Assembly: GCA_002269645.1 (NCBI GenBank)
Contig: NIVC01000067.1
Coordinates: forward strand, 310,001 to 374,000
Source: Macrostomum lignano
Lineage: Eukaryota
Length of the DNA stretch: 64,000 bases
Direction: 5' to 3'
Program-made: the position numbers and the translations under genes
The notes under the pieces: model-generated
Told to the model about the DNA's origin: nothing
Database searches by the model: none
What the model saw: only the letters and a program-made list of their open reading frames with translations
Part shown: positions 2,469-38,263 of the stretch, in pieces
Position numbering within the stretch: the first letter of the stretch is position 1
Layout: every line of letters begins with the position of its first letter

Positions 2469-3750
2469 AATATATTTATAATATATAAATTATAATAGTG
2501 TTGTTTCTTTGTTTCTTGTTTTATAACAAAATATACAAAACATCAAAACAATTATTTCTTGTATAGGCCCTATACATTTTTAAATATTGTCCTAATAGTC
2601 ATTACTCATTTTATAACAAAATTCATTATATATTTAAAAAATAGAAATTTTCAAAAGCATAAAACTTTTAGTTACTTTGCCATTTATTGTATAACAGGCC
2701 TAGGAATACTTTTATTTCATAGAAAAAAAATTAAACCTATATAAAATTAAGGGTGGGGTTGGGTACAGTGGATAGGGCCTACCAAAAACCAGAAGGCAAT
2801 TAAGTGCCTGCAGTGCTAAAATGAGTGCCTGCGATGCCAAAATGAGTGCCTGTGGCACCAAAATAAGTTGCCTGTAGCACTAAAATGAGTGTCTGCAGCA
2901 TTAAAATGAGTGCCTGTGGCGCCAACTTACTTTCGTTTTTACTGTCTCATGGGGACTATATTCCAAGAGTCTATAAAAGTGACATACCATTTAAAAGAAG
3001 GTATTCTTATCTACAAAATGAGATAAAGTTTTGACAATCTGCTCGATAGATACTCAAGAAAATTAGCAATATTGATAGAAATTTTTGAAATAATATGCGT
3101 TTTGAAGTTTTTTCTTGATTTGGGATGTCTGTAGAAAAATTGCTCTACAGACCACTATTTTTAACTTACATTCAAAACGAAACACTTTTTGAATTCAGTG
3201 TTAAATTTTCTACAAAGTGATACAACACACATACCAATCTGATAAATAGTTCAGCAAAAAATGCCACTGTTCGGTTGATGATACCAAATTGACTGTTCGG
3301 TTCGGTTTTCAGATCTCGGGATCATCAACCGAACAGAAAAATCTTCAAAACCGAACGAACAAAAATGGTCCAAAAAAACTTATTTTTCGCTCGCTTATTC
3401 TACCTTACAATAAAAAAGATCTTTTTTAAAAAAGAAAAACTCATTTAAGCCACGTAATTGCAAATATTTCGAGCTTAAAAATGTACCAATTTTTATGCAA
3501 AATACATAAGAGGATTATTCCATTCTGACAAAATCTTGCTATTAATTGCTTCTATTTCTACTAAAAGTAGCTAAAAGCAACATATATATTTTCTTTTCAG
3601 AATTCCGCAGCATAAAAAAGAAAATCGAATCAACAAGACAGGCCAAGTTGGATGTGCTAGGCGGCCTACTATAGGCCTAGGCCTAATGGTAGCCGCTTTA
3701 CTGTTAAACGATTTAAGAGTAAAGCCTATTAAACGTCTAATTTAATTTAT

Positions 3751-3928
<178 letters not shown>

Positions 3929-3948
3929 CCACAGGTACAATACAAAAT

Positions 3949-6900: not shown

Positions 6901-9900
6901 CGCCCTTGATACATGTAGATTGATGGATAGAAGCAGTTAGAGAGGCGCCCTTGATACATGTAGATTGATGGATCGAAGCAGTTAGAGAGGCGCTCTTGAT
7001 ACATGTAGATTGATGAACAGTTAGAGAGGCGCCCATGATACATGTAGATTGATGGATAGAAGCAGTTAGAGAGGCGCTCTTGATACATGTAGATTGATGG
7101 ATAGAAGCAGTTAGAGAGGCGCTCTTGATACATGTAGATTGATGGATAGAAGCAGTTATAGAGAGGCGCCCTTGATACATGTAGATTGATGGATAGAAGC
7201 AGTTAGAGAGGCGCTCTTGATACATGTAGATTGATGGATAGAAGCAGTTATAGAGAGGCGCTCTTGATACATGTAGATTGATGGATAGAAGCAGTTATAG
7301 AGAGGCGCCCTTGATACATGTAGATTGATGGATAGAAGCAGTTAGAGAGGCGCCCTTGATACATGTAGATTGATGGATAGAAGCAGTTAGAGAGGCGCCC
7401 TTGATACATGTAGATTGATGGATAGAAGCAGTTAGAGAGGCGCTCTTGATACATGTAGATTGATGGATAGGAGCAGTTATAGAGAGGCGCCCTTGATACA
7501 TGTAGATTGATGGATAGAAGCAGTTAGAGAGGCGCCCTTGATACATGTAGATTGATGGATAGAAGCAGTTAAAGAGGCGCCCACATGTAGATTGATGGAT
7601 AGAAGCAGTTAGAGAGGCGCCCTTGATACATGTAGATTGATGGATAGAAGCAGTTAGAGAGGCGCTCTTGATACATGTAGATTGATGGATAGAAGCAGTT
7701 AGAGAGGCGCTCTTGATACATGTAGATTGATGGATAGAAGCAGTTAGAGAGGCGTTCTTGATACATGTAGATTGATGGATAGAAGCAGTTAGAGAGGCGC
7801 CCTTGATACATGTAGATTGATGGATAGAAGCAGTTAGAGAGGCGCCCTTGATACATGTAGATTGATGGATAGAAGCAGTTAGAGAGGCGCCCTTGATACA
7901 TGTAGATTGATGGATAGAAGCAGTTAGAGAGGCGCCCTTGATACATGTAGATTGATGGATAGAAGCAGTTAGAGAGGCGCCCTTGATACATGTAGATTGA
8001 TGGATCGAAGCAGTTAGAGAGGCGCTCTTGATACATGTAGATTGATGAACAGCCGTTAGAGAGGCGCCCATGATACATGTAGATTGATGGATAGAAGCAG
8101 TTAGAGAGGCGCTCTTGATACATGTAGATTGATGGATAGAAGCAGTTAGAGAGGCGCTCTTGATACATGTAGATTGATGGATAGAAGCAGTTATAGAGAG
8201 GCGCCCTTGATACATGTAGATTGATGGATAGAAGCAGTTAGAGAGGCGCTCTTGATACATGTAGATTGATGGATAGAAGCAGTTATAGAGAGGCGCTCTT
8301 GATACATGTAGATTGATGGATAGAAGCAGTTATAGAGAGGCGCCCTTGATACATGTAGATTGATGGATAGAAGCAGTTAGAGAGGCGCCCTTGATACATG
8401 TAGATTGATGGATAGAAGCAGTTAGAGAGGCGCCCTTGATACATGTAGATTGATGGATAGAAGCAGTTAGAGAGGCGCTCTTGATACATGTAGATTGATG
8501 GATAGGAGCAGTTATAGAGAGGCGCCCTTGATACATGTAGATTGATGGATAGAAGCAGTTAGAGAGGCGCCCTTGATACATGTAGATTGATGGATAGAAG
8601 CAGTTAAAGAGGCGCCCACATGTAGATTGATGGATAGAAGCAGTTAGAGAGGCGCCCTTGATACATGTAGATTGATGGATAGAAGCAGTTAGAGAGGCGC
8701 TCTTGATACATGTAGATTGATGGATAGAAGCAGTTAGAGATGCGCTCTTGATACATGTAGATTGATGGATAGAAGCAGTTAGAGAGGCGCTCTTGATACA
8801 TGTAGATTGATGGATAGAAGCAGTTAGAGAGGCGCCCTTGATACATGTAGATTGATGGATAGAAGCAGTTAGAGAGGCGCTCTTGATACATGTAGATTGA
8901 TGGATAGAAGCAGTTAGAGAGGCGCTCTTGATACATGTAGATTGATGGATAGAAGCAGTTAGAGAGGCGCCCTTGATACATGTAGATTGATGGATAGAAG
9001 CAGTTAGAGAGGCGCTCTTGATACATGTAGATTGATGGATAGAAGCAGTTAGAGAGGCGCTCTTGATACATGTAGATTGATGGATAGAAGCAGTTAGAGA
9101 GGCGCTCTTGATACATGTAGATTGATGGATAGAAGCAGTTAGAGAGGCGCCCTTGATACATGTAGATTGATGGATAGAAGCAGTTAGAGAGGCGCCCTTG
9201 ATACATGTAGATTGATGGATAGAAGCAGTTAGAGAGGCGCCCTTGATACATGTAGATTGATGGATAGAAGCAGTTAGAGAGGCGCCCTTGATACATGTAG
9301 ATTGATGGATCGAAGCAGTTAGAGAGGCGCTCTTGATACATGTAGATTGATGAACAGCCGTTAGAGAGGCGCCCATGATACATGTAGATTGATGGATAGA
9401 AGCAGTTAGAGAGGCGCTCTTGATACATGTAGATTGATGGATAGAAGCAGTTAGAGAGGCGCTCTTGATACATGTAGATTGATGGATAGAAGCAGTTATA
9501 GAGAGGCGCCCTTGATACATGTAGATTGATGGATAGAAGCAGTTAGAGAGGCGCTCTTGATACATGTAGATTGATGGATAGAAGCAGTTATAGAGAGGCG
9601 CTCTTGATACATGTAGATTGATGGATAGAAGCAGTTATAGAGAGGCGCCCTTGATACATGTAGATTGATGGATAGAAGCAGTTAGAGAGGCGCCCTTGAT
9701 ACATGTAGATTGATGGATAGAAGCAGTTAGAGAGGCGCCCTTGATACATGTAGATTGATGGATAGAAGCAGTTAGAGAGGCGCTCTTGATACATGTAGAT
9801 TGATGGATAGGAGCAGTTATAGAGAGGCGCCCTTGATACATGTAGATTGATGGATAGAAGCAGTTAGAGAGGCGCCCTTGATACATGTAGATTGATGGAT

Positions 9901-11086
9901 AGAAGCAGTTAAAGAGGCGCCCACATGTAGATTGATGGATAGAAGCAGTTAGAGAGGCGCCCTTGATACATGTAGATTGATGGATAGAAGCAGTTAGAGA
10001 GGCGCTCTTGATACATGTAGATTGATGGATAGAAGCAGTTAGAGAGGCGCTCTTGATACATGTAGATTGATGGATAGAAGCAGTTAGAGAGGCGCTCTTG
10101 ATACATGTAGATTGATGGATAGAAGCAGTTAGAGAGGCGCCCTTGATACATGTAGATTGATGGATAGAAGCAGTTAGAGAGGCGCTCTTGATACATGTAG
10201 ATTGATGGATAGAAGCAGTTAGAGAGGCGCTCTTGATACATGTAGATTGATGGATAGAAGCAGTTAGAGAGGCGCCCTTGATACATGTAGATTGATGGAT
10301 AGAAGCAGTTAGAGAGGCGCCTTGATACATGTAGATTGATGGATAGAAGCAGTTAGAGAGGCGCTCTTGATACATGTAGATTGATGGATAGAAGCAGTTA
10401 GAGAGGCGCTCTTGATACATGTAGATTGATGGATAGAAGCAGTTAGAGAGGCGCCCTTGATACATGTAGATTGATGGATAGAAGCAGTTAGAGAGGCGCC
10501 CTTGATACATGTAGATTGATGGATAGAAGCAGTTAGAGAGGCGCTCTTGATACATGTAGATTGATGGATAGAAGCAGTTAGAGAGGCGCCCTTGATACAT
10601 GTAGATTGATGGATAGAAGCAGTTATAGAGAGGCGCCCTTGATACATGTAGATTGATGGATAGAAGCAGTTAGAGAGGCGCTCTTGATACATGTAGATTG
10701 ATGGATAGAAGCAGTTAGAGAGGCGCTCTTGATACATGTAGATTGATGGATAGAAGCAGTTAGAGAGGCGCTCTTGATACATGTAGATTGATGGATAGAA
10801 GCAGTTATAGAGAGGCGCCTTGATACATGTAGATTGATGGATAGAAGCAGTTATAGAGAGGCGCTCTTGATACATGTAGATTGATGGATAGAAGCAGTTA
10901 GAGAGGCGCTCTTGATACATGTAGATTGATGGATAGAAGCAGTTAGAGAGGCGCTCTTGATACATGTAGATTGATGGATAGAAGCAGTTAGAGAGGCGCT
11001 CTTGCTTGATACATGTAGATTGATGGATAGAAGCAGTTAGAGAGGCGCTCTTGATATTGATGGATAGAAGCAGTTAGAGAGGCGCT
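3949..11086. repeat. 45-bp satellite (TTGATACATGTAGATTGATGGATAGAAGCAGTTAGAGAGGCGCYC)n, ~7.1 kb
   Basis: Unit repeated ~155 times with 42- and 47-bp variants; explains all ORF-track entries 3742-10965. Confidence 0.97.
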
Positions 11087-12151
11087 TTTTTGAAAATTGA
11101 ATAGAAAAGAGGTTTGACATTATTGTAAAAATTTAATGTACTTTACCTTAAAAGTTGGTTGAATTGTAAAGTAAATTTGGTAGACTACACTTTCTTGTTA
11201 ATGCGCTTTCGATTGATAGGCCTTACTCGAGAGCTTTACTCCAGCATATATTTCAAAAATGGCCTAAGGATAAAAAAGATAGATAGCTACTCAAGAGCCT
11301 TGCTTTCTTTGAGCTAGCCTATGCCTAGTTTAAAAGCTGGCCTGTAGTGATGCAATCCTAGGCCTACCAATGTAAGAGTCAACCTACGAGTACTTGAGCT
11401 GTGGGATTTCCAACCAGCCAATGGGAATCAGACCGCGAGTTTTTACTCTTGTATGACTAGGCCTAACGTGAACTCCCACATTCACATGCCACTGCCAGGC
11501 TCCATAACCTTATATTTGAGCAGAACTAGGACCATTGCGCGTAGGCCTACTGATCGGTCTAGGCCTCATCAATAGAACCGGTATCGGCGCAGCGGGGGGG
11601 TGAGGCAGATCGAGAGGGCTGCTGCCCCCGGATGACCCTCCGGACCACCCTACCATCCCTTCGAGGGGTATGAGCAGCTCGTTGTATTGCGAGATTTTAG
11701 CTTAATGCACTGCTCTAATTTTAAAAATTCGCTGGGGGAGGGGGGTCACCACCCAAACACCGCCCTCTTAATCAGCAAGGGCGGATTTACTTGGAACCCC
11801 CCAAAATGAAACTCTAGATCCGCCACTGTTAATCAGAGGTGCAGCATCGCAACTGATTTGAACCAACATCGAAAGCAAAAATACATTTAGCCTATCGGCC
11901 ATTTCCGTCACTAGTTAGGGCCTAAAGCAAAACGTAGGCCTATAGTACTCGTATAGGCCTAAAATACCTAAATACTTCAATTTTAAAGAATACAAATTAA
12001 AGATACATATCTACATAATTTAATTCTTAACTGTACATGAACTCCTAGTTTTCTCTAAGAACTCATCCTAGACTTATAGTTATCAATTATTATAACTAAC
12101 ATAATTAGCCCTAATTAGTGTTTCAGTGAATTAAAAACAGCAAAATGTTTT

Positions 12152-13153
12152 CTGTGATTGAGTGAAAATGCTGAGCTGGGTCAGACTCAGCTCATTCTGA
12201 ATGCATGATGGACTCACGTGCTGGGACACACAGAGACAGTTGGAGAAGGAATCGGCCTGTTTGATGAAGAGGTTATAGCGGCTCTCAAGTCCTCTCTTTC
12301 TGTGTTTGAGTGAAAATGCTGAGCTGGGTCAGACTCAGCTCATTCTGAATGCATGATGGACTCACGTGCTGGGACACACAGAGACAGTTAGAGAAGGAAT
12401 CGGCCTGTTTGATGAAGAGGTTATAGCGGCTCTCAAGTCCTCTCTTTCTGTGTTTGAGTGAAAATGCTGAGCTGGGTCAGACTCAGCTCATTCTGAATGC
12501 ATTATGGACTCACGTGCTGGGACACACAGAGACAGTTAGAGAAGGAATAGGCCTGTTTGATGAAGAGGTTATAGCGGCTCTCAAGTCCTCTCTTTCTGTG
12601 TTTGAGTGAAAATGCTGAGCTGGGTCAGACTCAGCTCATTCTGAATGCATGATGGACTCACGTGCTGGGACACACAGAGACAGTTAGAGAAGGAATCGGC
12701 CTGTTTGATGAAGAGGTTATAGCGGCTCTCAAGTCCTCTCTTTCTGTGATTGAGTGAAAATGCTGAGCTGGGTCAGACTCAGCTCATTCTGAATGCATGA
12801 TGGACTCACGTGCTGGGACACACAGAGACAGTTAGAGAAGGAATCGGCCTGTTTGATGAAGAGGTTATAGCGGCTCTCAAGTCCTCTCTTTCTGTGATTG
12901 AGTGAAAATGCTGAGCTGGGTCAGACTCAGCTCATTCTGAATGCATGATGGACTCACGTGCTGGGACACACAGAGACAGTTAGAGAAGGAATCGGCCTGT
13001 TTGATGAAGAGGTTATAGCGGCTCTCAAGTCCTCTCTTTCTGTGATTGAGTGAAAATGCTGAGCTGGGTCAGACTCAGCTCATTCTGAATGCATTATGGA
13101 CTCACGTGCTGGGACACACAGAGACAGTTAGAGAAGGAATCGGCCTGTTTGAT
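12152..13153. repeat. 148-bp tandem repeat, ~6.8 copies
   Basis: AGTGAAAATG recurs at 12161, 12309, 12457, 12605, 12753, 12901, 13049. Confidence 0.95.
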
Positions 13154-13805
13154 TTCTTCGGCTATAGCTTTAAGTTCCTTTTGTGTCTAGGGCCTAGTCA
13201 AGTGACTGAAGGCTTAGTTTTGGTTTTATCTACAAACGATATTTTTAAAAAGAGTATAATATGCTCCAAAATTGGTAGTGGGCCAACAAACGACAGGGGA
13301 ACATCTCGGCGGGGCTTTTCGCATTTTTACGTAGACCGATGTCAGAGTCATTTTAGTTTGTCATGGGCAACTCTGTTTCTATTTAGACCCTTGCCATACG
13401 CCGTACACCATCAACATTTGAGCCAAATTGAGCCGAGTTGTCTAGGTGCGAAAAATTGGTTGGGCAGACTGTTTACGATAAGGGCTGTCTATTAGTCCAG
13501 TTTTACAGCGAACAGAAATGAAAATTCGCAAGTCCGTAGGAAGGATTCGGTTCAAATTTAAGCACGATTTTTCCTACCAAACAGTCAATCGTATTGTGCA
13601 GAATCCATGGGCCATACTCTTATAGGGGTAATATGCAAATTGATCTGCATATCCTTATCTTTCTGTTAACTCTTGACTGTTGCGCAAACTTCGGTTCGTT
13701 TTCGCACTTTGAATCGACTCATGCACGTTCTAAGCATGCTAGCTAGACCAAACGAAATGTCAGAAACTTAATCTCGTATGGAAGCTCCTAGAAGTATGTA
13801 TGGAA

Positions 13806-14371
13806 GATGGAGAGGAAGGGGCGATGGAGAAGAAGGGGCGGATAGAGAAGAAGGGGCGGATAGAGAGGAAGGGGTGGATGGAGAGGAAGGGGCGGATGGA
13901 GAGGAAGGGGCGGATGGAGAGGAAGGGGTGGATGGAGAGGAAGGGGTGGATGGAGAGGAAGGGGCGAATGGAGAGGAAGGGGCGGATGGAGAGGAAGGGC
14001 GGATGGAGAGGAAGGGGCGGATGGAGAGGAAGGGGCGGATGGAGAGGAAGGGGCGGATGGAGAGGAAGGGGCGGATGGAGAGGAAGGGGCGGATGGAGAG
14101 GAAGGGGCGGATGGAGAGGAAGGGGCGGATGGAGAGGAAGGGGCGGATGGAGAGGAAGGGGCGGATGGAGAGGAAGGGGCGGATGAAGAGGAAGGGGCGG
14201 ATGGAGAGGAAGGGGCGGATGGAGAGGAAGGGGCGGATGGAGAGGAAGGGGCGGATGGAGAGGAAGGGGCGGATGGAGAGGAAGGGGCGGATGGAGAGGA
14301 AGGGGCGGATGGAGAGGAAGGGGCGGATGGAGAGGAAGGGGCGGATGGAGGGAAGGGGCGGATGGAGAGGA
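13806..14371. repeat. 18-bp purine-rich minisatellite (GATGGAGAGGAAGGGGCG)n
   Basis: Direct observation. Confidence 0.95.
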
Positions 14372-15358
14372 TAGTGGATAGGGAGAAAGGATCCGCTGTC
14401 TCTCCTAGTCTCAGTGTCTATCTATATGTAGCTATTCTGCACCTTCAGATTTACGCATCAAAATCCTTTGGCTGATCTAATATTTGGATCCAGAAAACTT
14501 TGAAAGGTGAGTGGGCGCATAATGAATGGTGCAGTTGGCAAAGGAAGTGAAGAGAGAGAAAGAAAGAGAAAGGAAAAAGATATAGTGAGATAGATGTGCC
14601 CAGAGTGAGAGATGGATAATGCCATTCCATATAGATCAGCATGTTCGTGCATCTAAAGTTAAAAACTGAACGAAGAGGAAAAATAGGTCTTAAAAGAAAA
14701 GAACTTTAGGAACTTTTCTCGCGTTGTCATTGGTTAGCCTAGTTTATTGCTCAGCCATGAGGATTGGCTGTTCCTGGCTGCTTTTTTGGCGCAACCAATT
14801 AGCTATCATGAAATGTGTTCCCATAGGTCTTGAACCTTTGGCATTGGATCCAACGTCTCTTCCTGCGTTTCGCGATATATACAAGCTACATAAAATTTAA
14901 GACTGATTGCCCTTAATTACTTTAAACTTTCATTTTCAAAGCTCTTCAATAGCATCTGACATCTGCAACATCGTTTGGAGATCGTACAACCGGATATCTG
15001 CATCTTTCGTGAAACTTTTAAAATATTTTTTCTAATTATTGGCTTTTTATTCATATAGGCTTAGTCCAGGTCAATTAACATAATATCTCATTAGGTCTAA
15101 CTTAGTTTTATTAGCTAATAAACTCAAATAGCAATTTAGGGTCTTATAAGTCTAGTGATATTGTAGTGATCAAATCCATAATTCTAGCTGTGCTCCAGGG
15201 ATACTTTACTTAGACTAACCCAGTTAATATTTATTACTGTGTAGACTAGCGTATATACTTCGTATATAAACTAAATTTAGTCGAAGACTAGGCCGTATAG
15301 GTTTGTTTAGTAGTTCTTTAAGTTTTTTTACAAGGTCTAAATTAATAGAGAGACAGGT

Positions 15359-15718
15359 ATGGCAGCAATTAGAAGCAAGAAGGAGAGAGTCCAAGCCGCA
15401 GTGGACAGTGTAATTGAAAGAATTCGCACTGGCAAAGAGTGCAATTATCGAAAAATTGCTCAAGAATTTTCCGTACCTACCACCACCGTTTATGACAGAG
15501 CTCGCAGGCTGATGAACGGGCTGAAGGTGACGGAAAAAAATACTGCCAAGCGGTATTTGACGCAGGCCGAGGAGCGAGTCTTCTGTGATGCAATCAAGCA
15601 GGCCGCTCGACAGCAGGTCCCCATCACGAGGAAGAAGCTGCTCGAAATGGCAAGTGAGACTGTCCGCAACATCGGCGTTTCGAATGAGGAGCGCTGCGGT
15701 TTGCGTGACGCCACCAAG
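15359..15718 (+). CDS. pogo/Tigger-like transposase, exon 1 (psq-type HTH and start of CENP-B/Tc5 HTH)
   Basis: NYRKIAQEFSVPTTTVYDR helix-turn-helix; YLTQAEERVF..I motif; phase-0 donor AAG|GTAGGC at 15718/15719. Confidence 0.85.
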
Positions 15719-15798
15719 GTAGGCCAAATTTTAAAATAATAAGAAGCCTGCTTGGACTCAAACATATTTAACTGTTAATTCTCTATCAATCGCATGTC

Positions 15799-17944
15799 TA
15801 TCTCTGAATCAGCACCTGTCTATCACCTCTCTATCAGCCGCCCGTCTGTCTCCTCTCTATCAGCCGCCCGTCTGTCTCCTCTCTATCAGCCGCCCGTCTG
15901 TCTCCTCTCTATCAGCCGCCCGTCTGTCTCCTCTCTATCCGCCGCCCGTCTGTCTCCTCTCTATCCGCCGCCCGTCTGTCTCCTCTCTATCAGCCGCCGG
16001 CGCCCGTCTGTCTCCTCTCTATCAGCCGCCCGTCTGTCTCCTCTATATCAGCCGCCCGTCTGTCTCCTCTCTATCCGCCGCCCGTCTGTCTCCTCTCTAT
16101 CAGCCGCCCGTCTGTCTCCTCTCTATCAGCCGCCCGTCTGTCTCCTCTCTATCAGCCGCCCGTCTGTCTCCTCTCTATCAGCCGCCCGTCTGTCTCCTCT
16201 CTATCAGCCGCCCGTCTGTCTCCTCTCTATCAGCCGCCCGTCTGTCTCCTCTCTATCAGCCGCCCGTCTGTCTCCTCTCTATCAGCCGCCCGTCTGTCTC
16301 CTCTCTATCAGCCGCCCGTCTGTCCCTCTCTATCAGCCGCCCGTCTGTCTCCTCTCTATCAGCCGCCCGTTAATCTCTGAATCAGCACCTGTCTATCACC
16401 TCTCTATCAGCCGCCCGTCTGTCTCCTCTCTATCAGCCGCCCGTCTGTCTCCTCTCTATCAGCCGCCCGTCTGTCTCCTCTCTATCAGCCGCCCGTCTGT
16501 CTCCTCTCTATCAGCCGCCCGTCTGTCTCCTCTCTATCAGCCGCCCGTCTGTCTCCTCTCTATCAGCCGCCCGTCTGTCTCCTCTCTATCAGCCGCCCGT
16601 CTGTCTCCTCTCTATCAGCCGCCCGTCTGTCTCCTCTCTATCAGCCGCCCGTCTGTCTCCTCTCTATCAGCCGCCCGTCTGTCTCCTCTCTATCAGCCGC
16701 CCGTTAATCTCTGAATCAGCACCTGTCTATCACCTCTCTATCAGCCGCCCGTCTGTCTCCTCTCTATCAGCCGCCCGTCTGTCTCCTCTCTATCCGCCGC
16801 CCGTCTGTCTCCTCTCTATCAGCCGCCCGTCTGTCTCCTCTCTATCAGCCGCCCGTTAATCTCTGAATCAGCACCTGTCTATCACCTCTCTATCAGCCGC
16901 CCGTCTGTCTCCTCTCTATCAGCCGCCCGTCTGTCTCCTCTCTATCAGCCGCCCGTCTGTCTCCTCTCTATCAGCCGCCCGTCTGTCTCCTCTCTATCCG
17001 CCGCCCGTCTGTCTCCTCTCTATCAGCCGCCCGTCTGTCTCCTCTCTATCAGCCGCCCGTCTGTCTCCTCTCTATCCGCCGCCCGTCTGTCTCCTCTCTA
17101 TCAGCCGCCCGTCTGTCTCCTCTCTATCAGCCGCCCGTCTGTCTCCTCTCTATCAGCCGCCCGTCTGTCTCCTCTCTATCAGCCGCCCGTCTGTCTCCTC
17201 TCTATCAGCCGCCCGTCTGTCTCCTCTCTATCAGCCGCCCGTCTGTCTCCTCTCTATCAGCCGCCCGTCTGTCTCCTCTCTATCAGCCGCCCGTCTGTCT
17301 CCTCTCTATCAGCCGCCCGTCTGTCTCCTCTCTATCAGCCGCACGTCTGTCTCCTCTCTATCAGCCGCCCGTCTGTCTCCTCTCTATCAGCCGCCCGTCT
17401 GTCTCCTCTCGATCAGCCGCCCGTCTGTCTCCTCTCTATCAGCCGCCCGTCTGTCTCCTCTCTATCAGCCGCCCGTCTGTCTCCTCTCTATCCGCCGCCC
17501 GTCTGTCTCCTCTCTATCAGCCGCCCGTCTGTCTCCTCTCTATCAGCCGCCCGTCTGTCTCCTCTCTATCCGCCGCCCGTCTGTCTCCTCTCTATCAGCC
17601 GCCCGTCTGTCTCCTCTCTATCAGCCGCCCGTCTGTCTCCTCTCTATCAGCCGCCCGTCTGTCTCCTCTCTATCAGCCGCCCGTCTGTCTCCTCTCTATC
17701 AGCCGCCCGTCTGTCTCCTCTCTATCCGCCGCCCGTCTGTCTCCTCTCTATCAGCCGCCCGTCTGTCTCCTCTCTATCAGCCGCCCGTCTGTCTCCTCTC
17801 TATCAGCCGCCCGTCTGTCTCCTCTCTATCAGCCGCCCGTCTGTCTCCTCTCTATCAGCCGCCCGTCTGTCTCCTCTCTATCAGCCGCCCGTCTGTCACC
17901 TCTCTATCAGCCGCCCGTCTGTCTCCTCTCTATCAGCCGCCCGT
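15799..17944. repeat. 26-bp minisatellite (CAGCCGCCCGTCTGTCTCCTCTCTAT)n inside transposase intron 1
   Basis: ~80 units with a recurring variant TTAATCTCTGAATCAGCACCTG. Confidence 0.95.
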
Positions 17945-17993
17945 TTATCTCCTCAATGTGATTATACGAGTATATATTCTACTTGCCTACCAG

Positions 17994-19293
17994 GTCAAGC
18001 CAGCCGGACTGTCGAAGGGCTGGATTACCGGATTTCTGTTGCGCCATCCCGACATCGCTCAGCGAACGCCGCAGACGGTGAATCCTGCCCGGGCGATCGT
18101 AACGGAGGGCCGCATTCGTGATTGGTTTTCCGAGCTGGCCGACTTCGATGACGATGACCTTGTCGACGGCGCGCTGCAAGATCCGTCGCGAATTTTTAAT
18201 TGTGACGAGATTGCAGTGCCGCAAGGATTGAAGTCTCACGCTGTTCTGGCAGAGAAAGGAATGGTAAACGTGGTGCAGAAGGTCCACGGCAGTGACCGGA
18301 AGCACACCACAGTTTTAATTTGTGTTCAATGCTCAGGTTCTCTATTGCCACCCCGCTTTGTTTTTCCAGGAAAGACGCAGCCTCGAATGGATGGCTATCC
18401 CACTGATTGTCATTATTCTTTTTCACCCAACGGGTGGATGACCACCACTGGGTTTGAGGAATTTATTAAAAAAACATTCATGCCCTATCTAGAACAAAAG
18501 CGAGTTCGCCGTCCTGTTGTCCTTTTCACAGATTTACACGGCTCCAGATTTTCGCTGGAGGTTCTGGAGTATCTGAGGCAGCAGAAGGTTGTGCTCTACG
18601 GGCTGGTGCCGAACGCAACGCACGTCATGCAGCCTCTGGACCTCGCTGTGTTTCGTCCCGTCAAGATGGGATGGCGCGAGCTTCTCGCCGACAGGTCCCG
18701 GAGTGCTGCGATTGGAGACTCTGTCACCAGGCTGCGATTCGTGGAAATGCTCCGCGAGGTCCTGGCAGAGCGGGCTACTCCGCAGAACATCATGGCTGGC
18801 TTCCGAAAAAGTGGCATTTTTCCGCGGAACCCTGATGCTCTAGCGTATGACAAGCTCTGCAAGCGGCAAGACCCGGCTCCTAAGCAGCAAGCAGCAGGTG
18901 AGAAGGATTGTGAATGCGTGCTAAAAGCAAGCAACACCGCCCCCACCTCTAGCCTCCCACAGAAAAAATTTAAATCAAAAAAGTGCCAAACAGCCTCAGG
19001 CTCTGTGGAGCGCTGCTTCGAGGATGTTCTTGGCACCGCTAAGCTTCACGACTTGCAAACGAAGCCAGCAACGACCGACAATGATCGCGTACTGCAGCAG
19101 CTGCTGCTGCGCCTGACCGGACAGGTGAACTGCCAACAGATCAGTGACGAGCACGTGAGCTCCGACCAGCAGAGCACTGACAGCGAGGACCAGATCGAGA
19201 GCAGCCCACTGCATCATCCCTCTCTCGATGAGGATACCGTCGAGGCGGTTGAACCACAGAGTGAGGATTTGCTCGATGCAGAGAGACAGTCTG
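17994..19293 (+). CDS. pogo-like transposase, exon 2 (Tc5 HTH end plus DDE_1 catalytic domain, DD35D)
   Basis: Acceptor CAG|GTC at 17993/17994 in phase 0; SKGWITGFLLRHP; NCDE (D 18204), FTDLHGSR (D 18531), MQPLD (D 18639), 35 aa between D2 and D3; phase-1 donor GTGAGT at 19294. Confidence 0.92.
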
Positions 19294-19424
19294 GTGAGTA
19301 GTCGGTAAATTTTGAAAAGTAAACTCAAATTAACGTATAGTATACAAGTAAATTTCACGTAAAGACGTAAAAGATGTGACACTGTAAATTACATTGTACA
19401 CTACTTTGAGACCATCTTCCTAAT

Positions 19425-19700
19425 TTTCTCTCCTCTCCTCTCTCCTCTCTCCTCTCTCCCCCTCCTTCTCTCCTCTGCTCTCCCTTCTCCCCTCCTCTCC
19501 CTTCTCCCCTCTCCTCTCCCTTCTCCCCTCCTCTCCCTTCTCCCCTCTCCTCTCCCTTCTCCCCTCCTCTCCCTTCTCCCCTCCTCTCCCTTCTCCCCTC
19601 CTCTCCCTTCTCCCCTCCTCTCCCTTCTCCCCTCTCCTCTCATCTTCCTTATTTCCCCCTCTTCTCTCTCCCTTCTTTCTTTCTCATCTCCTGTCTATGT
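19425..19700. repeat. CT-rich low-complexity tract in transposase intron 2
   Basis: (CTCCCTTCTCCCCTC)n-like run. Confidence 0.85.
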
Positions 19701-19824
19701 TACGCAGTCATGCGCTATATTTTATATCTGATCATTAACTTAAAAGCTTATCGACTTCATCATTCATATATATTTTTTCTTCATGATTGCTAAGTTTGAG
19801 CTACAAATTATTTATTTCGTTCAG

Positions 19825-20933
19825 GTGCCTTTTGCTCTGTGACGTCAGTATCACCCGCAGCTCGAGAAACAGCCGAGTCGATGGCGTTCCCGATAAAGCG
19901 GAACCGGACTCCAGTTTCCGGCAAGAAAAGAAGAACGTCCGTTTACCAGGACATTCCGCATCCTAACTTAACTAGCCGCTCTACTTTAGCCTTTTTCAGA
20001 CTAAGACAGCAAAAGCGTCAGGCTGCTCTGGACGCCAAGGCCGCACGGCAGACCGCTCGGAGGCTTCGGGCACAGCAGCGTCAGCGTCAAGGTTCCCGGC
20101 GACTGCAGTCGAAGCAGACGGTCGCAGCTGAGCAACCGGTCGCCCAATCTGCCGTGCTGGATATGTCCGTCGCTTTAGGTCGGCTTGAGAGCAAGGCGAA
20201 GTCGTTGAATTGCTCCTTAGGTAAGGCAGATTCTTTTGGAAATTGTTTTTTTGACTCCGTCCGGCAGGTGCTGAGTTCCGAAGGCATCAATTCCGACGCC
20301 GACAGACTTCGATCAGACAGCTGCGCTTTCCTAGAGCAAAACTCCTATGTAAATGGTGAGAGTATCGTTGACTTTTTGGAAATGCCACTTAATGACTATT
20401 TACAAAAAATGAAACGTTCAAGTACCTATGCTGATCATCTTATTATCGTTGCATTAGCCAATTTCTTAGACAGGCCTTTTCAGATTTACCAGCCTGACCG
20501 TCCGGAGCCGGTAGTCATCATGCCAGAGGATCGCCACCCAGAAGGGCAACCAATCAAGCTGGCGCACATCCCAGAGCTGCACTATCTGCCGATGCTGCCG
20601 CTACCTCTGCCGGAGCTAAGCGTTGACTGCTGGGTGCTGGTTGCCGTGCAGGCAACTTGCAGAGGACGAAAAGCTTGGCAGCATTACCCGTGTCGAGTCA
20701 TTCAACTCCAGGGCGATGGCCAAGTCGTTGTCTCTGCCTGCACTCAGTCGGTGACAAACTGGATGGCTGGAGGTCAAAAGCCATTCATATTCCCGGCCAA
20801 GAGTGACGAGTTCAGCGCATTGGTGAGTGAGGTCGCAGTTTTACCCAATCCCCATTTTCCTACGGGAAGGAATCCTGGATTCCTCTGGACCCGTGATCAG
20901 CTCATGAATGCTCGCAGCCGCCTTATTCACTGA
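19825..20933 (+). CDS. pogo-like transposase, exon 3: basic linker, OTU cysteine protease-like domain, C-terminal Tudor/SH3-like domain
   Basis: Acceptor TTCAG|GT at 19824/19825 restores frame with exon 2; ADSFGNCFFDSV (Cys), STYADHLIIVALA, LAHIPELHY (His); WVLV...YPCRV...FIFPAKSD tail. Confidence 0.8.
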
Positions 20934-21002
20934 GTTGATCACTAGGCCTAGAAATTACGTCCCCATCGTTCTATCACATTTTATGAATTTTATGAACTCA
21001 AA

Positions 21003-22530
21003 TGACCGTTCACTGCTCATTTAATTTCCTGCATTGCTCAACAATTGCCTCATTGCCTAACCTTCAAATCATAATGAATGCTAACTTCACTTTGACATTG
21101 CTTCTATCAAACATCACCATGCACAAGACTTTCATCAAAAGTTTAAAATCTAAAAAAACAAAAAAATTACAAGTATTGCTTGCCTATTTTTCTTCAGCAC
21201 ATTCGCACTAAAATGACTGCTCACTGACTCAAGCTCTCTCATCTATATTTCCTCTCCTCTCCCCTGTCATCTCGCTCTCTTCTCACCCTCTCTTGTCGCT
21301 TCTCTCTTCTCTCCCCTACCATCATCCCTCTCATCCCTCTATCCCCTCTCCTCTCTACCATCCTCTCCTCTCTCCCCTTCTCCTCTCTCATCTCTCCTCT
21401 CCCTCTCCTCTCTCATTTCCTTTCTCCCTCCTTTCTCATCTTCCGGCCTCTCTCCATTCTCACCTATCCTCTCATCTCCTTTTTCATCTCCTTTCTCCCC
21501 TCTCCCTTTTTCTTTCTCTCTCATCTCCGCCTATCATCTCTCAGCTTGACTCTAATCTATTCGCTTTTCCCTTCTCTCTCCTCTCTCATCTCCCTTCTCC
21601 CCTCTCATCCGCTCTCTATCTCCTTTCTCACCTCTCACCTCTCATCTTCCCTCTTTATCTTTGCACTGTACTCAAAATTGAAAAAAAAAACAAAAAAATT
21701 ACAAGTACATGTATTGCTCGCCTATTTTGCTTCAGCACATTCGCACTAAAAATTACTGCACACTGATTGCTCATTAACTTTCATTTAATTTCCTGCATTG
21801 TTCAACAATTGCCTCATTGCCTAACCTGCACTCTCTATTTAAATCATAATGAATACTAACTCACTTTGACTTGTACATTGCTTCTATCAAACATCACCAT
21901 GCACAAGACTTTCATCAAAAGTTTAAAATCTAAAAAAAACAAAAAAATTACAAGTATTGCTTGCCTATTTTTCTTCAGCACATTCGCACTAAAATGACTG
22001 CTCACTGACTCAAGCTCTCTCATCTATATTTCCTCTCCTCTCCTCTCCTCAGCTGTCATCTCGCTCTCTTCTCACCCTCTTCTGTCGCTTCTCTCTTCTC
22101 TCCCTTATCATCTTCCCTCTCATCCCTCTATCCACTCTCCTCTCTACCATCCTTTCCTCTCTCCCCTTCTCCTCTCTCCTCTCCCTCTCCGCTCTCATTT
22201 CCTTTCTCATCTTCCCTATCTCCTCTCTCCAATCTCCCCTATCATCTCCCTTCTTCCCTCTCCTCTCTCATCTCCTTTTTCCCTCCTTTCTCATCTTCCG
22301 GCCTCTCTCCCTTCTCCATTCTGCCCTATCCTCTCACCCCTTTTTCATCTTCTTTCTTCCCTCTCCCTTCCTCTTTATTCTCTTTCATCTCCGCCTATCA
22401 TCTCTCAGCTCCCCTCTCCCATCTTTGCACTGTACTCAAAATTGAAAAACAAAAAAATTACAAGCATTGCTTGCCTATTTTGCTTCAGCACATTCGCACT
22501 AAAAATTACTGCATACTGACTGCTCATTAT
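21003..22530. repeat. ~770-bp imperfect tandem duplication with CT-rich cores
   Basis: TCATTTAATTTCCTGCATTG...GCACATTCGCACTAAAA block occurs twice (21.0 and 21.8 kb). Confidence 0.8.
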
Positions 22531-25500
22531 CATTAATTTTCCTTGTCTTGATACATGGCGCTATATATGTCTATAAATCTTACGAGCGTAATATTGGTGA
22601 CTTTTGACTTGGTGACTCAGCAACAAGCATTTCCAACGCACATTAATTTAAATTTGGGTCAAAAGCCTATTATCAACAATGGGAAAACATACGAGCTAGA
22701 TACAGTAGGTTTTAATAAGCCTTTAAATTTTTTATGGAACTGTAATACTTTTACTTGTAATCCCGATAGAAACATTATGCGTTCTTATACAAAACCATTG
22801 GATTTATTTTATGTGCCTGACTAATGTCAGAATTTTTTATAATTAAAGATGAACTCAAACTGATAGTGCGGAAGATATGCTTGCTGCTGCGGCAGGGAAG
22901 GGCCTCCTTCTCGGTTAAAAAAAGCCCCTGCCGACGAAGCCAAGGAAGAAAGGTGACAGTTAAAAAGAAATTAAAAATGCAACTGTCACTTTTTGAGTCA
23001 CGACGAGAAGGAATTGAGCAATATCCTGGAAGCTATCAATGTCAAAAGGCCTAGCTTCTATCCAATTAAGAATGACAATACATGTAGTTACGTTTTTGTA
23101 GTGCCTTATAGGCTTAATCATTGGCCAGCGAATTTAGTCATTTCAAATATTCTGAAGCATAAAAACAAACTCAATAAAGTTTGAGTGCATTCGAGTCTAT
23201 ATCTTTAATATCTTTCGGCATATTAATTACTGTGGAATATTTAAGGATGAGCTATTCTTGCTGAGTTATAATTATGTATTACATATATGTATGTAGCATT
23301 TGCTTTTTGTATTTCTATTTCGCGTATACATGTACGAGCCTATATCTCTAGTTGGCCTCTGCGAGTTTGGCGCCTATAGTCTGTGTACAGTATCGCAAAT
23401 ATGTAAGTCAGGTCAGTATTATAGCCTGGCTGCCAGGAGTCGGGGGCAAGAGGGAGCTGCGCCCCCACCCCCCAGGCTGGTAAAAGTATGTAGCGCCCCA
23501 TTGCCAGTGGGCTTGGCTCCCCCCCCCCTCTTGCCACCAAGCTTGCCCATCCGCCCAATTAGAAATTCTGGCTATGCCCTTGTATTAAGATGTTTACTCT
23601 ATTATACTGCGCACATATCTTAAACCTATAAAAAGGGTCAGCCGATTGCCTGCCATCGATTGGGCCTATGTGGCAATTAGTTTTGCACTCTCTTCAAAGA
23701 TCTTCTTGAGCCTGTATACATTAAGTTTAGACCTAGCCCCAGAGAAATGTTGGATTGTGGCCTCTTTTGCAATGTGTATGTGTACAAAATGTATGCAATA
23801 CAAGTATTCAATATATATACTAAGCGCACAGGCGCACCCAATGAGCCTTTTTTAGGGAGGGTTTAGCGGCCCCATCTTGCTGGTTGTGTCAAGGGGCCCA
23901 GTGATGACTCAGTGCTCAGAGTCATCAGACTCTGCAGACTCAGAACGAGATGATTGTTTTCAACAAAATTTTAAGAACTTACAGCATTTTTCTCTGCATA
24001 TTGGATTCATCTACTTGAAGTAGAAACATATGAGTATGGTAAGAAAAAAAGAAACAGAATATTTGCAGAATTTGTTTGCAGAAAAATGGACTTTTTTTTA
24101 CTATTTCTTGAATTTTTCGCTTTTTCTTCTTTAATGTTTAAAAATGACCAATAATATAGCAAGAAGAGCAGTAGACGAAACTAGTGGTACCTTGATTTTT
24201 TTTAAATCGTGGTATAATGGTGAAATACAGGCAAGTTTAGGAAGCGAAGGTCCCTTTGAAGAAATCTGAAATGAACAAAATATGAGGTCTGTTTAAAAAA
24301 AACAGGATTTTTTACCTTCGTAAATGATTGCTTAATTAAAAAAGTCTAAAATACGTAGAAAAATATAACTTTTTATCAATTTAGCATGAAAGAGTTCAAA
24401 TAAATCGCAAAAAAGTAAAAAATCACGATTTTTCTGTTCAATGGGGGGTACTATATTCAAATGCAGATAAACAATATTTTTCGGAATCTATCCATGCAAA
24501 AGTTATACCTTTTAGAAAGAGTATGAACTAATCTTTACAATGATATATATTTCAGAAAAAACGAACAAGAAATAAAAAAGTTATTAGTGTTTAAACACAA
24601 AAACCGAACATCAGATATCCTGTTCGGTTTGAAGATACCCTAGAATCATCGTTCGGTTTTGATATAAAATCATCAATAACTTTCTTTCTACTTGTGCAAT
24701 CAAGTAAAGCGAACATTCATTTGAAAGAAAAAAATGTTTTAAACAACTTCGGGGTAGTTTCATTTCATTACATATAAAACTTTCTTTCCTATCTATGAGA
24801 GAATGTCGAAAAATGACACTTTCATGTTCGGTTGATGAGATCTTACCCTGTCTGTAGCACCAAAAGTGGCAATGGCATAAGGCATGGCTAGCCAGGCCAA
24901 CTTGCCCCCCCCCAATTGAAATTCCTGGCTATACCATTGTTGATATAAATTTCAATTGTTTTTATCTTTTTTCACTTATAGAAATAATAATTAGCAAGCT
25001 ATTTTAAGTAATTAATTTGGCTTTTTAAAAGCTTATTAAAAGCTATCATAATATTAAATATATTGCTATTAAAAAATACAAAAATGTTTTTTTTGTATAA
25101 AAAGAAATAAAGATACTTGAATGTTGATATGCCAATGTTTTGGGCCCCAACCAATTTTAAATTGCACTAGATTGTTAGCTATAAAAAACTTGCATTGGCT
25201 TTAATAAAGCAAAATAATAAAAAAATCCTTTTATTTATGTCTGCTTTGTATGTATATTAAACCTAATAAGTGGTATAATAGAAATTAGACTGATTATTAC
25301 TAGCAAATGTCTAACTCTTGCATTGTAACCTCTAGAGTCTAGTTCATATCTATACATATATATTAATTTGGGTTTTATAGGTTTATTTGCAATTTATATT
25401 TTAGAAGGCAAACCCCCCAAGGCACGGAGAGTGTACATGCCTGGCAATTAGAAAGTCAGGATGGCTGTGCACCCTATGTGAGTCTGTGTATGAGTACATG

Positions 25501-28244: not shown

Positions 28245-28694
28245 TCATTCTGCTCTCTCAACCCCCAGCTCTTTCAACAGTCTTCCTAGTTCTTGACTTG
28301 GCGCGTGCAATGCAAAACCCACCCCACCTTCGCCTTGAACCCCCAAACCCAACTTTGCCTTACTAAAAATAACAGCTTTAACTAGCTTCCGAGCGATCGA
28401 TTCCTTCCACCCGCTTGAAGCCCCTATATTGTCTAGTCTCTTAAGCATTTCTTTGTCCCAACGATTCTTCTCCTCAGGAAAATCTCTATATTTAACGTCA
28501 TGCCACATGCAGACAGAGTCTAGCTCGTTCACAGGCTCATGCCCAGGATTTGGATTATTGTTTTTATCTAACTGTATTTCAAGTGGATTCAAAGGCCCGC
28601 AATATTTATAGCCGGGAAGTGTCCAGCCTTTGTTTAGATGAGGAAGCTTTTCTATCAGTCCATGTGAATCTATTTTACCACCAGAGCGTTGCAT
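28245..28694 (-). CDS. parvovirus VP1u-type phospholipase A2-like protein
   Basis: LPGYKYCGP Ca-loop and LDSVCMWHDVKY catalytic HD motif. Confidence 0.85.
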   Translation of the reverse strand: MQRSGGKIDSHGLIEKLPHLNKGWTLPGYKYCGPLNPLEIQLDKNNNPNPGHEPVNELDSVCMWHDVKYRDFPEEKNRWDKEMLKRLDNIGASSGWKESIARKLVKAVIFSKAKLGLGVQGEGGVGFALHAPSQELGRLLKELGVERAE

Positions 28695-28724: not shown

Positions 28725-29761
28725 ATGACAGATCAGAAACTTAAAAAACTCTACTACAGCGACAAAGGATTCTTTGTAGGAAAAAATGCAGTCACCAAAC
28801 TCGCAGAACTAAGTAAGGAACCAAAAGCTAAAGTAGAAAAGTGGCTCTCTAAGCAGGCTGTCTTTCAAGTCTATTTCCCACCAGTAAAATTTGAAAGGCC
28901 CATTTCAGTATTTATAAACCTAATGAAGCGCACCAAGCAGATCTTTTGTTTCTCCCCAACGACTCAGGCTACAAGTATGCTCTTACAATTATTGACATTG
29001 CTTCCAGATATAAGGAAGCTCGCCCACTCAAGACGAAGAAGTCAGAGGTTGTTGCCAGCGCACTGCAAGATATTTATAAAAACTCTCCGCTCACATACCC
29101 CCAAATCTTTATGACCGACCCGGGTAAGGAATTCATGGGTGTAGTGAAATCCCTTATGGAAAAGAAAAACACAGAGATTCGCTATGGCAGAACAAACTTG
29201 CACAGAGACCAGGCTTTTGTGGAAAGATTCAATCTAACTCTAGCCAAGAGACTATTCACTAAGCAGACAGCGCAAGAACTCAAACTGAGTGCGGGGCAGT
29301 ACTATACCAAGTGGACAGAAATACTCCCCACTGTTATAGAGCAACTGAACAATGAAGTCACACGCATGACTGGATTGAAACCATCCCATGCAATTAAACA
29401 AGACACTGTCGAACTTAAGGCATCTCATAGAACAGACAACAACACGACAACCCCACACAACACACACAACACAAAACACACCTCGAACTACCCTAAGCTT
29501 CCAGGAGTTGAATCACCATACATACTGACAAACTCTGAGTTTCTACGCTTTTTATATCTACCTGGAGAGCTAGAGAAAGACACCAAAAGAAGAGCTACAG
29601 ATCCATACTTCAGCCTTGATGTGCATAAAATAGACAGACATTTTACCTCCGACTCCGGTGACTATTACTTTTTATCTCAAGCCTTTAACCCTAAATCCCC
29701 CACGCGGTCATTCACTAGAGCTGAACTCCTAGTGATACCAGCTGACACAGAAATTAATTAA
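28725..29761 (+). pseudogene. int: retroviral-type (rve) integrase with one 1-nt deletion at ~28899
   Basis: HQADLLFLP, KYALTIIDIASRY, TDPGKEF, VERFNLTL; frames join at AGG CC|CAT (RPHF). Confidence 0.88.
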
Positions 29762-37861: not shown

Positions 37862-38263
37862 ATGACAACAAATAACTTTCTTGAAGATTTGGCTAACGAA
37901 CTGGAAATCCCAAACTTTAGAGGAATATTTATGAGGGACACTCTGCCTGATTTTCCTCTAAGAAAAGAATGCGGCATCATGAACTTTGACACCACCGATA
38001 AGCCAGGATCTCATTGGGTTTGCTGGGTGATTGATCCCAATCGCAAGCACAAGTGTTATTACTTCGATAGCTATGGGACGGCAGTACCAGAAGAGCTAAG
38101 AAATTATATGAAGGGAAAAAATAATAAAAAAATTTATCGCTCAGACTTTATTCTCCAAGGTCTTAGCAGTGATATTTGCGGTGAGCTGTGCATGACTGTT
38201 TTGTATGCAATGACCAAAACACGAAAGACCTACAAGGAAATTATTCGTACCTGTGTTTCATAA
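37862..38263 (+). CDS. adenain-like cysteine maturation protease (Polinton 1)
   Basis: GSHWVC, YFDSYG, LQGLSSDICG: His-Asp-Gln-Cys present. Confidence 0.9.
   Translation: MTTNNFLEDLANELEIPNFRGIFMRDTLPDFPLRKECGIMNFDTTDKPGSHWVCWVIDPNRKHKCYYFDSYGTAVPEELRNYMKGKNNKKIYRSDFILQGLSSDICGELCMTVLYAMTKTRKTYKEIIRTCVS

Follow-up and report, generated by a model that had tools for sequence, protein, structure and literature searches.

A pogo transposase gene of the flatworm Macrostomum lignano encodes an OTU-fold cysteine protease domain in the same polypeptide

Background

A three-exon gene on the forward strand of a 64,000-nucleotide stretch of the Macrostomum lignano genome (NCBI GenBank assembly GCA_002269645.1, contig NIVC01000067.1, positions 310,001 to 374,000) encodes a pogo-type transposase and an OTU-fold cysteine protease domain in one polypeptide of 922 amino acids (aa). 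The whole stretch is called the window in this paper, and coordinates are given within it unless another contig is named. The gene, at 15359-20933, is real and intact. The pogo-OTU architecture that it specifies is very rare but is present in at least three independent datasets, and sequence comparison places the protein in a small, rare clade of pogo transposases that carry an OTU domain.

OTU domains have been described in other DNA transposons. In Ginger1 elements an OTU domain (PF02338) lies C-terminal to the DDE transposase core, and OTU domains are also found in animal Helitrons (Bao, Kapitonov & Jurka 2010, PMC2836005). Two large surveys of pogo elements (PMC7386202, PMC7325037), however, never mention OTU, protease or ubiquitin, and text searches of the broader literature returned no report of a pogo-OTU protein. 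An earlier note on this DNA, made from the letters alone, had taken as its background that pogo transposases normally lack a protease while OTU cargo is known elsewhere, and in the literature searched this holds. A fusion of OTU and DDE transposase is therefore already known from Ginger1, but a pogo transposase as the carrier was not found in that literature.

Results

The three exons concatenate to an open reading frame (ORF) of 2769 nt on the + strand with no internal stops, which ends with TGA at 20931-20933. Exon 1 (15359-15718, aa 1-120) contains the start codon, a psq-like helix-turn-helix (HTH) at 15383-15508 (aa 9-50) and the first half of a CENP-B/Tc5-type HTH. The second half of this HTH, which ends at 18065, is in exon 2 (17994-19293, aa 121-554, the last codon being split), where it is followed by the DDE_1 core at about 18186-18863 and by an acidic, Ser-rich linker. 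Exon 3 (19825-20933, aa 554-922 and the TGA) encodes the remainder of the linker, a KKRR/'LTSRSTLAFF' motif, a basic coil, the OTU domain and a C-terminal tail. Intron 1 (15719-17993) is 2275 nt long, is in phase 0 with GT-AG ends, and is filled almost entirely by a 26-bp minisatellite of approximately 82 copies at 15818-17954. Intron 2 (19294-19824) is 531 nt long, in phase 1, and runs from GTGAGT to TTCAG, with CT-rich repeats inside it at 19429-19690. The splice contexts are canonical in both cases, that is, AAG/GTAGGC at the donor and a pyrimidine-rich TTGCCTACCAG/G at the acceptor of intron 1, and CTG/GTGAGT and TTTCGTTCAG/G, respectively, for intron 2. Read through the donors, the exon frames meet a stop 7 codons beyond donor 1 and 2 codons beyond donor 2, and acceptor 2 is closely preceded by stop codons in the frame of exon 3. 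The exons are uniform in composition (52-54% GC), whereas the flanks are 37-40% GC. The join of three exons through GT-AG sites in matching phases, which the earlier note had proposed, is thus borne out by the 2769-nt frame, and we infer that both junctions are spliced in vivo.

The transposase part is identified by its catalytic core. In a Pfam search with the 922-aa protein, DDE_1 matches aa 224-351 with E=1.5e-13 and 51.1 bits against a cut-off of 22. The catalytic Asp residues are D191 (codon 18204-18206), D300 (codon 18531-18533) and D336 (codon 18639-18641), all on the + strand and all in columns conserved with relatives. The 35 residues between D300 and D336 make this a DD35D triad, which falls within the spacing of approximately 30-36 residues between the last two Asp that is characteristic of a pogo DDE_1 core, and the core is intact, as had been claimed. 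The DNA-binding regions score lower, with 15.4 bits for HTH_Tnp_Tc5 at aa 71-144, across the exon 1/2 junction (cut-off 22.2), and 11.9 bits for HTH_psq at aa 9-50 (cut-off 20.4); a member of the same clade, P0095, is above the Pfam cut-offs for both families, and its HTH regions align with those of the window protein.

The OTU-fold cysteine protease domain is at 20157-20606 on the + strand (aa 665-814). It contains the predicted catalytic Cys694 in an FGNC motif (codon 20244-20246), a Y-A-D-H motif, and the predicted catalytic His806 in an LHY motif (codon 20580-20582); the Cys and His are at the positions that had been assigned to them from the letters alone. In the whole protein Pfam PF02338 matches aa 692-784 (E=1.6e-7, 32.3 bits, cut-off 23.3), and exon 3 alone gives 33.9 bits. 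A single-sequence AlphaFold2 prediction of the segment was uninformative, with a predicted local distance difference test (pLDDT) of 36, and was replaced by a run with a 69-sequence alignment, in which pLDDT is greater than 90 over model residues 11-160 (aa 665-814). When this model was compared to the PDB with Foldseek, the best 50 matches were all OTU domains, the top ones being OTUD5/DUBA (3tmp), OTUD3 (4bou), yeast Otu2, OTUD1 and Wolbachia wMelOTU, and the superposition on OTUD3 4bou has a template modelling (TM) score of 0.84 on the target and a root-mean-square deviation (rmsd) of 2.2 A. Sequence matches in the PDB were to OTUD5 (phmmer E=7e-4, with His806 aligned to the histidine of HYNS) and to wMelOTU. 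The two tests that the earlier note had suggested for these domains, profile searches and structure prediction, therefore agree: DDE_1 and OTU are both above the curated Pfam cut-offs, and the domain models as an OTU.

In an alignment of 68 OTU relatives the Cys is conserved in 50/52, the His in 61/66 and the Asp of the (W/Y)(G/A)DH motif in 63/68, and all three features are also kept in the two relatives of the whole protein described below, L001 and P0095. The third catalytic residue of OTU proteases is an Asp or Asn two residues after the His (His+2). The window OTU has Leu at His+2, and it has Phe three residues before the Cys (Cys-3), so that neither the Asp/Asn at His+2 nor an Asp at Cys-3 is present. 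Both departures had been raised as caveats, correctly, but the one at His+2 is the norm of the subfamily, since this position is mostly Val among related OTUs and is Asp or Asn in 10/66 and another residue in 56/66. At Cys-3, L001 has Tyr and 32/51 relatives have Asp. Catalytic competence is plausible but unproven, and deubiquitinase activity is presumed. The nearest OTU domains belong to large multidomain invertebrate proteins with Mab-21, HEPN_DZIP3, nSTAND, Roc-COR, kinase or TPR domains, and the OTU domain was probably captured from a host gene of this kind.

We searched 5.8 billion proteins with the 922-aa model. The sole protein with both DDE_1 and OTU was P0001, at 44% identity; the remaining matches were OTU-less pogo transposases with 24-35% identity. 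The contig that encodes P0001 is L001, 3191 nt long, in the Logan data for SRR30276804. By tblastn, one frame of L001 covers aa 6-813 of the model at 49% identity and another covers aa 818-918 at 57%. L001 is intronless at both junctions and colinear with the model from start to stop, with equivalent start and stop codons, the start codon of exon 1 being aligned with the start of the L001 ORF. With intron 1 removed the window aligns to L001 without a gap across aa 120/121, and a conserved stretch shared with L001, AFCSVTSVSPAARETAES, begins right after acceptor 2, ahead of any ATG in exon 3. The L001 copy has suffered damage: TAA replaces a CAA (Gln) codon of the window, a single frameshift precedes the tail, and the second catalytic Asp is Asn. 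Seven tandem units of 19-20 bp (CCGTTGCTTAAYTACTTAA) at L001 1-140, directly upstream of its start codon, could be subterminal repeats or 5' untranslated region.

When 1.84 billion cluster representatives were scanned exhaustively by HMMER with the OTU and tail segment, 126 matched, and a local screen of these with the transposase part found a transposase in only P0001 and P0095. The second of these, P0095, is encoded without interruption over 838 aa by the 2623-nt Logan contig L002 of DRR639055, and its HTH_psq, HTH_Tnp_Tc5, DDE_1 and OTU matches all exceed the Pfam cut-offs. Its DGDC motif is canonical and its FTDLH...QPLD triad is intact, but the contig lacks the tail. Because L001 and L002 carry the same architecture in one frame, the fusion is not an artefact of the gene model. 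The order of HTH, HTH, DD35D core, linker, OTU and tail that had been read from the window in the earlier note is therefore repeated in single ORFs of two independent homologues, and the search for DDE_1 with OTU in other genomes, which had been proposed there, succeeded in two further datasets. Exon 3 alone, used as a query in a word-index search, matched nothing, not even P0001, which is a limit of the index and not evidence of absence. A scan of JGI metagenomes for members of the clade gave only five pogo fragments, of 21-34% identity and with no OTU.

In a neighbour-joining tree of the transposase region the window protein, L001 and P0095 form a clade relative to 19 OTU-less relatives in 77/100 bootstraps, and this grouping fits a single acquisition of the OTU domain. 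Compared to L001, nonsynonymous divergence (dN) is 0.21-0.60 and synonymous divergence (dS) is from 1.5 to above 3, or undefined (saturated). The ratio of the two, omega, is approximately 0.06 in the second HTH and DDE core, 0.18 in the linker, 0.31 in the OTU domain and 0.14 in the tail, values that are rough given the saturated dS. Since each segment has a dN much lower than its dS, all parts have been maintained as protein, under purifying selection.

A conserved motif, TSVYQDIPHPNLTSRSTLAFF, and after it a basic coil rich in Arg and Gln (together 19935-20099, + strand, aa 591-645) separate the linker from the OTU domain, and both are kept in L001. A similar segment, 'TS..W' and a basic coil, is present in the OTU-less relatives P0004, P0007 and P0008, as judged at the level of pattern. 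The C-terminal tail (20616-20930, + strand, aa 818-922) is approximately 100 aa long, is predicted to be beta-rich with a terminal helix, and is 57% identical to the L001 tail. A comparable ending is seen in P0002, P0004 and P0005, which have no OTU: a hydrophobic strand, YP..V, W.WP..D and then RG.Y. When the window and L001 tails were compared by hhalign to the tails of OTU-less pogo relatives, a comparison in which the C-terminus of the clam protein P0078 (see below) was also included, the probability was 66% (E=5.7e-5, 68 columns). A small hidden Markov model of the tail gave marginal scores only against the relatives. A profile of the tail matched nothing in the PDB except, spuriously, a repeat lectin, and nothing in Pfam except for a weak MBT match (E=0.002) in one relative. 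The Tudor/SH3-like label that had been given to the tail was not confirmed and is unproven, because the model confidence is low (pLDDT 34-66) and neither Pfam nor the PDB holds a family that the tail sequence matches. On these alignments the tail probably corresponds to the C-terminus of OTU-less pogo relatives. Since the tail would be shared with proteins that have no OTU domain, the OTU domain would be placed as an insertion, and it was likely inserted between an ancestral basic coil and an ancestral C-terminal tail. The exon 2/3 boundary falls in the linker, upstream of the conserved motif, and so the OTU domain is not a separate exon.

A gene for an OTU domain and tail also occurs on its own. 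P0078 is a 249-aa, three-exon gene of this type in the hard clam Mercenaria mercenaria (GCA_021730395.1, CM038759.1; L004 10001-11405), and no pogo transposase was found within 10 kb of it. An ORF of 787 aa (L004 7474-9837) is located on the same strand, 164 bp upstream of P0078; it has no Pfam or PDB match, and a search for its 'DFSEN' motif was also empty. Inverted repeats of 33 nt, 85% complementary, at L004 6285-6317 and 12663-12695 flank both clam genes, and the unit is located within an intron of the gene for DNA polymerase alpha subunit B, on the opposite strand. From its layout the clam unit is a candidate composite transposon carrying the OTU and tail module, which hints that this pair of domains may travel with other mobile elements.

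Terminal inverted repeats (TIRs) flanked by a TA target-site duplication (TSD), which mark pogo elements, are not found at the locus. Over 12000-24000 no inverted repeats were present beyond chance, comparison of the flanks with exact 9-mer seeds gave no TIRs beyond chance, and Smith-Waterman alignment of the flanks gave a best local score of 21, compared to 21.1 +/- 2.6 in shuffles. The caveat of the earlier note that no TIRs were seen was therefore correct. A 10-bp pair, TAGTGATCAA/TTGATCACTA, at 15164/20944 was rejected as a TIR, as about two such pairs are expected by chance. The low-complexity inverted repeats that bracket the gene are not TIRs either, and result from purine-rich arrays upstream and pyrimidine-rich arrays downstream in opposite orientation. 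Five copies of GTCTA/TAGAC, in both orientations, are found at 15095-15340, within 320 bp upstream of the ATG, and none downstream; a count of five is reached by 1.4% of windows, which is too weak to call them binding sites, and they may be binding-site remnants or chance. Upstream of the gene are satellites, namely a 148-bp repeat at 12500-13239 and an 18-bp GA-rich array at 13806-14371, and downstream a repeat with a period of approximately 780 bp and CT-rich cores (21017-22560) starts approximately 80 bp past the stop codon. The neighbourhood as a whole is rich in repeats and Mavericks. An exact look-up of the window ORFs of this gene in the protein collection found none of them.

The closest OTU-less pogo relative, P0002, is carried on L011 (Logan SRR10017625). 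On this contig AATTTCGTCA recurs about twelve times, in either orientation, on the two sides of the ORF (L011 1-1300 and 4015-4056), in an arrangement like that of subterminal binding sites. This arrangement points to the use, in this lineage, of subterminal repeat arrays rather than simple short TIRs.

Elsewhere in the window, one or more elements of Maverick/Polinton type occupy 28245-55208. Their parts include a protein-primed PolB with an Endonuclease_7 domain (34058-37828), a second, broken PolB copy (40055-42736), an adenovirus-type protease (37862-38263), a D5-like primase-helicase (43141-45152), a packaging ATPase (51146-51919), a double-jelly-roll capsid protein (51941-53305) and rve integrases (28946-29761 and 54163-55208). 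Of these proteins, the capsid protein and the ATPase each have an exact match among M. lignano entries at NCBI; one of the two clusters at >=90% identity with PAA48909.1, and the other is also on NIVC01000176.1. A 149-aa ORF on the minus strand (28245-28694) has a phospholipase A2 domain of parvovirus VP1 type (PF08398, E=3e-14) and adjoins a Maverick-type integrase ORF, from which it diverges; Mavericks do not usually have an accessory gene of this kind. At 3700-11000 is a tandem minisatellite of approximately 7 kb, in which long minus-strand ORFs (MYQERLSNCFYPSIY... repeats) are artefactual.

Discussion

We read the window copy as a transposase encoded by a transposon, either active or recently immobilised, and place the probability of this at about 0.5. 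The intact triad, the decayed state of L001, the GC contrast with the flanks, the AATTTCGTCA arrays of L011 and the surroundings rich in repeats and Mavericks all point to it, and from them we infer that the element is, or was, mobile. Its termini would no longer be recognisable because the locus lies in satellite DNA. In such an element the two HTHs would bind the element ends, and the DDD triad would perform cut-and-paste. The OTU domain might act in cis as an isopeptidase for ubiquitin or a ubiquitin-like protein, and might in this way protect the transposase, or factors at the site of excision or integration, from ubiquitin-dependent turnover or signalling. This role has also been put forward for the OTU and Ulp1 domains that Ginger1 transposases carry. 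The earlier note had likewise suggested that the transposase would strip ubiquitin from itself or from target chromatin, as a stability or anti-silencing module. The deubiquitinase activity of the window protein, and the substrate on which it would act, are presumptive.

Several observations weigh against this interpretation or against parts of it. Neither TIRs nor a TA duplication were found at the gene or on the two contigs of its relatives, L001 and L002. No second copy of the gene is present within the 64-kb window, and no near-identical or paralogous protein was found in the 5.8-billion-protein collection, which includes M. lignano proteins, so that the copy number looks low. Two spliceosomal introns are possible in a transposable element, but they also suit a host gene. 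The omega values are rough, the homology of the tail to OTU-less relatives is just moderately supported, and the Asp that many relatives have at Cys-3 is replaced by Phe, which counts against catalytic competence. Nor can a single acquisition be demonstrated from the OTU sequences, as the P0095 OTU ranks 73rd against the window OTU; this ranking is uninformative on single versus multiple capture, because the best matches of each OTU are the same tandem-OTU proteins.

Some of these observations are also what would be expected of a domesticated host gene, that is, a pogo-OTU transposase without ends that serves, for example, as a DNA-binding deubiquitinase at chromatin sites, in the manner of POGK, POGZ, CENP-B and TIGD. 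We regard domestication as possible but less likely. The missing TIRs and TSD, the two canonical introns, the lack of paralogues in the protein collections, and an intact ORF in which dN is far below dS in all domains are consistent with it, as is the loss in L001 of the second catalytic Asp with all else conserved, and one of the two pogo surveys describes the recurrent domestication of these transposases. The DD35D triad, however, is fully kept in both the window copy and P0095, the premature stop and frameshift of L001 indicate decay rather than exaptation, and the locus is in satellite- and Maverick-rich DNA and not among conserved genes. The suggestion of the earlier note that this may be a domesticated gene has points on both sides: its argument from missing TIRs is joined by the introns and the absence of paralogues, while the intact triad and the decayed relative favour a transposon. 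It seems very unlikely to us that the locus instead yields two products, a 554-aa transposase that ends at the TAG in a retained intron 2, and a separate OTU and tail protein that exon 3 would supply through an internal promoter or through spliced-leader (SL) trans-splicing to the 19824 acceptor. If intron 2 were retained, the protein would end at once in ...ERQSGE*, an ATG is present within exon 3 at aa 575, flatworms use SL trans-splicing, and the clam P0078 demonstrates a stand-alone gene for OTU and tail, but in L001 and L002 a single unbroken frame spans both transposase and OTU, the frame is maintained across the GT-AG pair, and the residues conserved with L001 start at the acceptor, before the first ATG of exon 3, with stops preceding the acceptor. 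The fusion may nevertheless have an alternative isoform beside it.

A further question is whether the OTU domain is a dead ubiquitin-binding module, or cleaves a target other than ubiquitin, for example in self-processing between the transposase and the tail. The replaced Asp at Cys-3 (FGNC here, YGNC in L001), the lack of Asp/Asn at His+2, and an omega of approximately 0.31 in the OTU domain against approximately 0.06 in the DDE core would fit such a loss or shift of function. We consider it unlikely nevertheless, as the window protein, L001 and P0095 all keep Cys694, His806 and the (W/Y)(G/A)DH motif, a His+2 without Asp/Asn is the rule in the subfamily (56/66), and the fold superposes on active deubiquitinases. 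Beyond these readings, and with little weight attached to it, the OTU domain with its beta-rich tail might be a portable accessory module that is swapped among unrelated DNA transposons and counters ubiquitin-dependent control by the host, being placed within a pogo transposase here and beside the 787-aa ORF in the clam, with OTU by itself in Ginger1 and Helitrons; or the flatworm copy might be a sequence-specific, DNA-tethered deubiquitinase of the host.

Through this locus, pogo would join Ginger1 and Helitrons as a third unrelated group of eukaryotic DNA transposons with an OTU protease. The related Ulp1 proteases are carried by Mutator-like, CACTA and Ginger elements. Such repeated, independent recruitment would argue that removal of ubiquitin or a ubiquitin-like modifier benefits transposition. 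The gene offers a compact test case, with a single intact polypeptide, a group of transposases whose cut-and-paste chemistry is well studied, and a clear OTU Cys to mutate; M. lignano, in addition, is a flatworm kept in the laboratory and has transgenesis tools.

Among known systems, canonical pogo elements (among them pogo, Tigger, pogoR and Passer; PMC7386202, PMC7325037) share with the window protein a DDE_1 core with a DD35D-type triad, an acidic C-terminal region and probably the bipartite N-terminal HTH, and over the transposase the window protein has 28-35% identity to its nearest relatives without OTU. Unlike the M. lignano locus, where neither was found, canonical pogo elements typically have TIRs and a TA TSD. 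The pogo-derived host genes POGK, POGZ, CENP-B, TIGD and JRK are alike in that a whole pogo transposase is combined with an extra functional domain and the TIRs have been lost, but what those genes have gained is a KRAB domain, zinc fingers or a domain for dimerisation, usually at the N-terminus and never a protease, and most of the genes have lost catalytic residues, whereas the triad is intact here. The best structural matches of the OTU domain are OTUD5/DUBA, OTUD3, OTUD1 and yeast Otu2 (probability 1.0, TM 0.72-0.84 on target, rmsd 2.2-3.5 A), with the Cys and His aligned; in contrast to these deubiquitinases the window OTU, which is 14-18% identical to them, has no Asp/Asn at His+2 and no Asp at Cys-3, and is located within a transposase. 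Helitrons and Helentrons are likewise animal DNA transposons with an OTU cysteine protease, but they are rolling-circle elements with Rep/helicase, and their OTU is part of another protein architecture.

A further parallel, in overall organisation, is Ginger1. In these elements too a DDE cut-and-paste transposase and an OTU domain C-terminal to the catalytic core are combined in one polypeptide, 1-4 introns frequently interrupt the coding sequence, the hosts are invertebrates (Hydra, Aplysia, aphid), and the OTU domain is proposed to provide a link with ubiquitin-dependent repair or turnover (PMC2836005). The catalytic domain of Ginger1 is, however, of Gypsy-integrase type, rve-like with YPYY, an H2C2 zinc finger and GPY/F, whereas the window protein has a pogo DDE_1 core with putative psq and CENP-B HTHs, and Pfam found neither rve nor an integrase zinc finger in its 922 aa. 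Ginger1 has clear TIRs, and none were seen around the M. lignano gene. The two also differ in the position of the OTU domain, which in the window protein is internal and is followed by a further conserved tail, so that the arrangement has the appearance of a domain inserted within the C-terminal region of the transposase and not of a plain terminal fusion.

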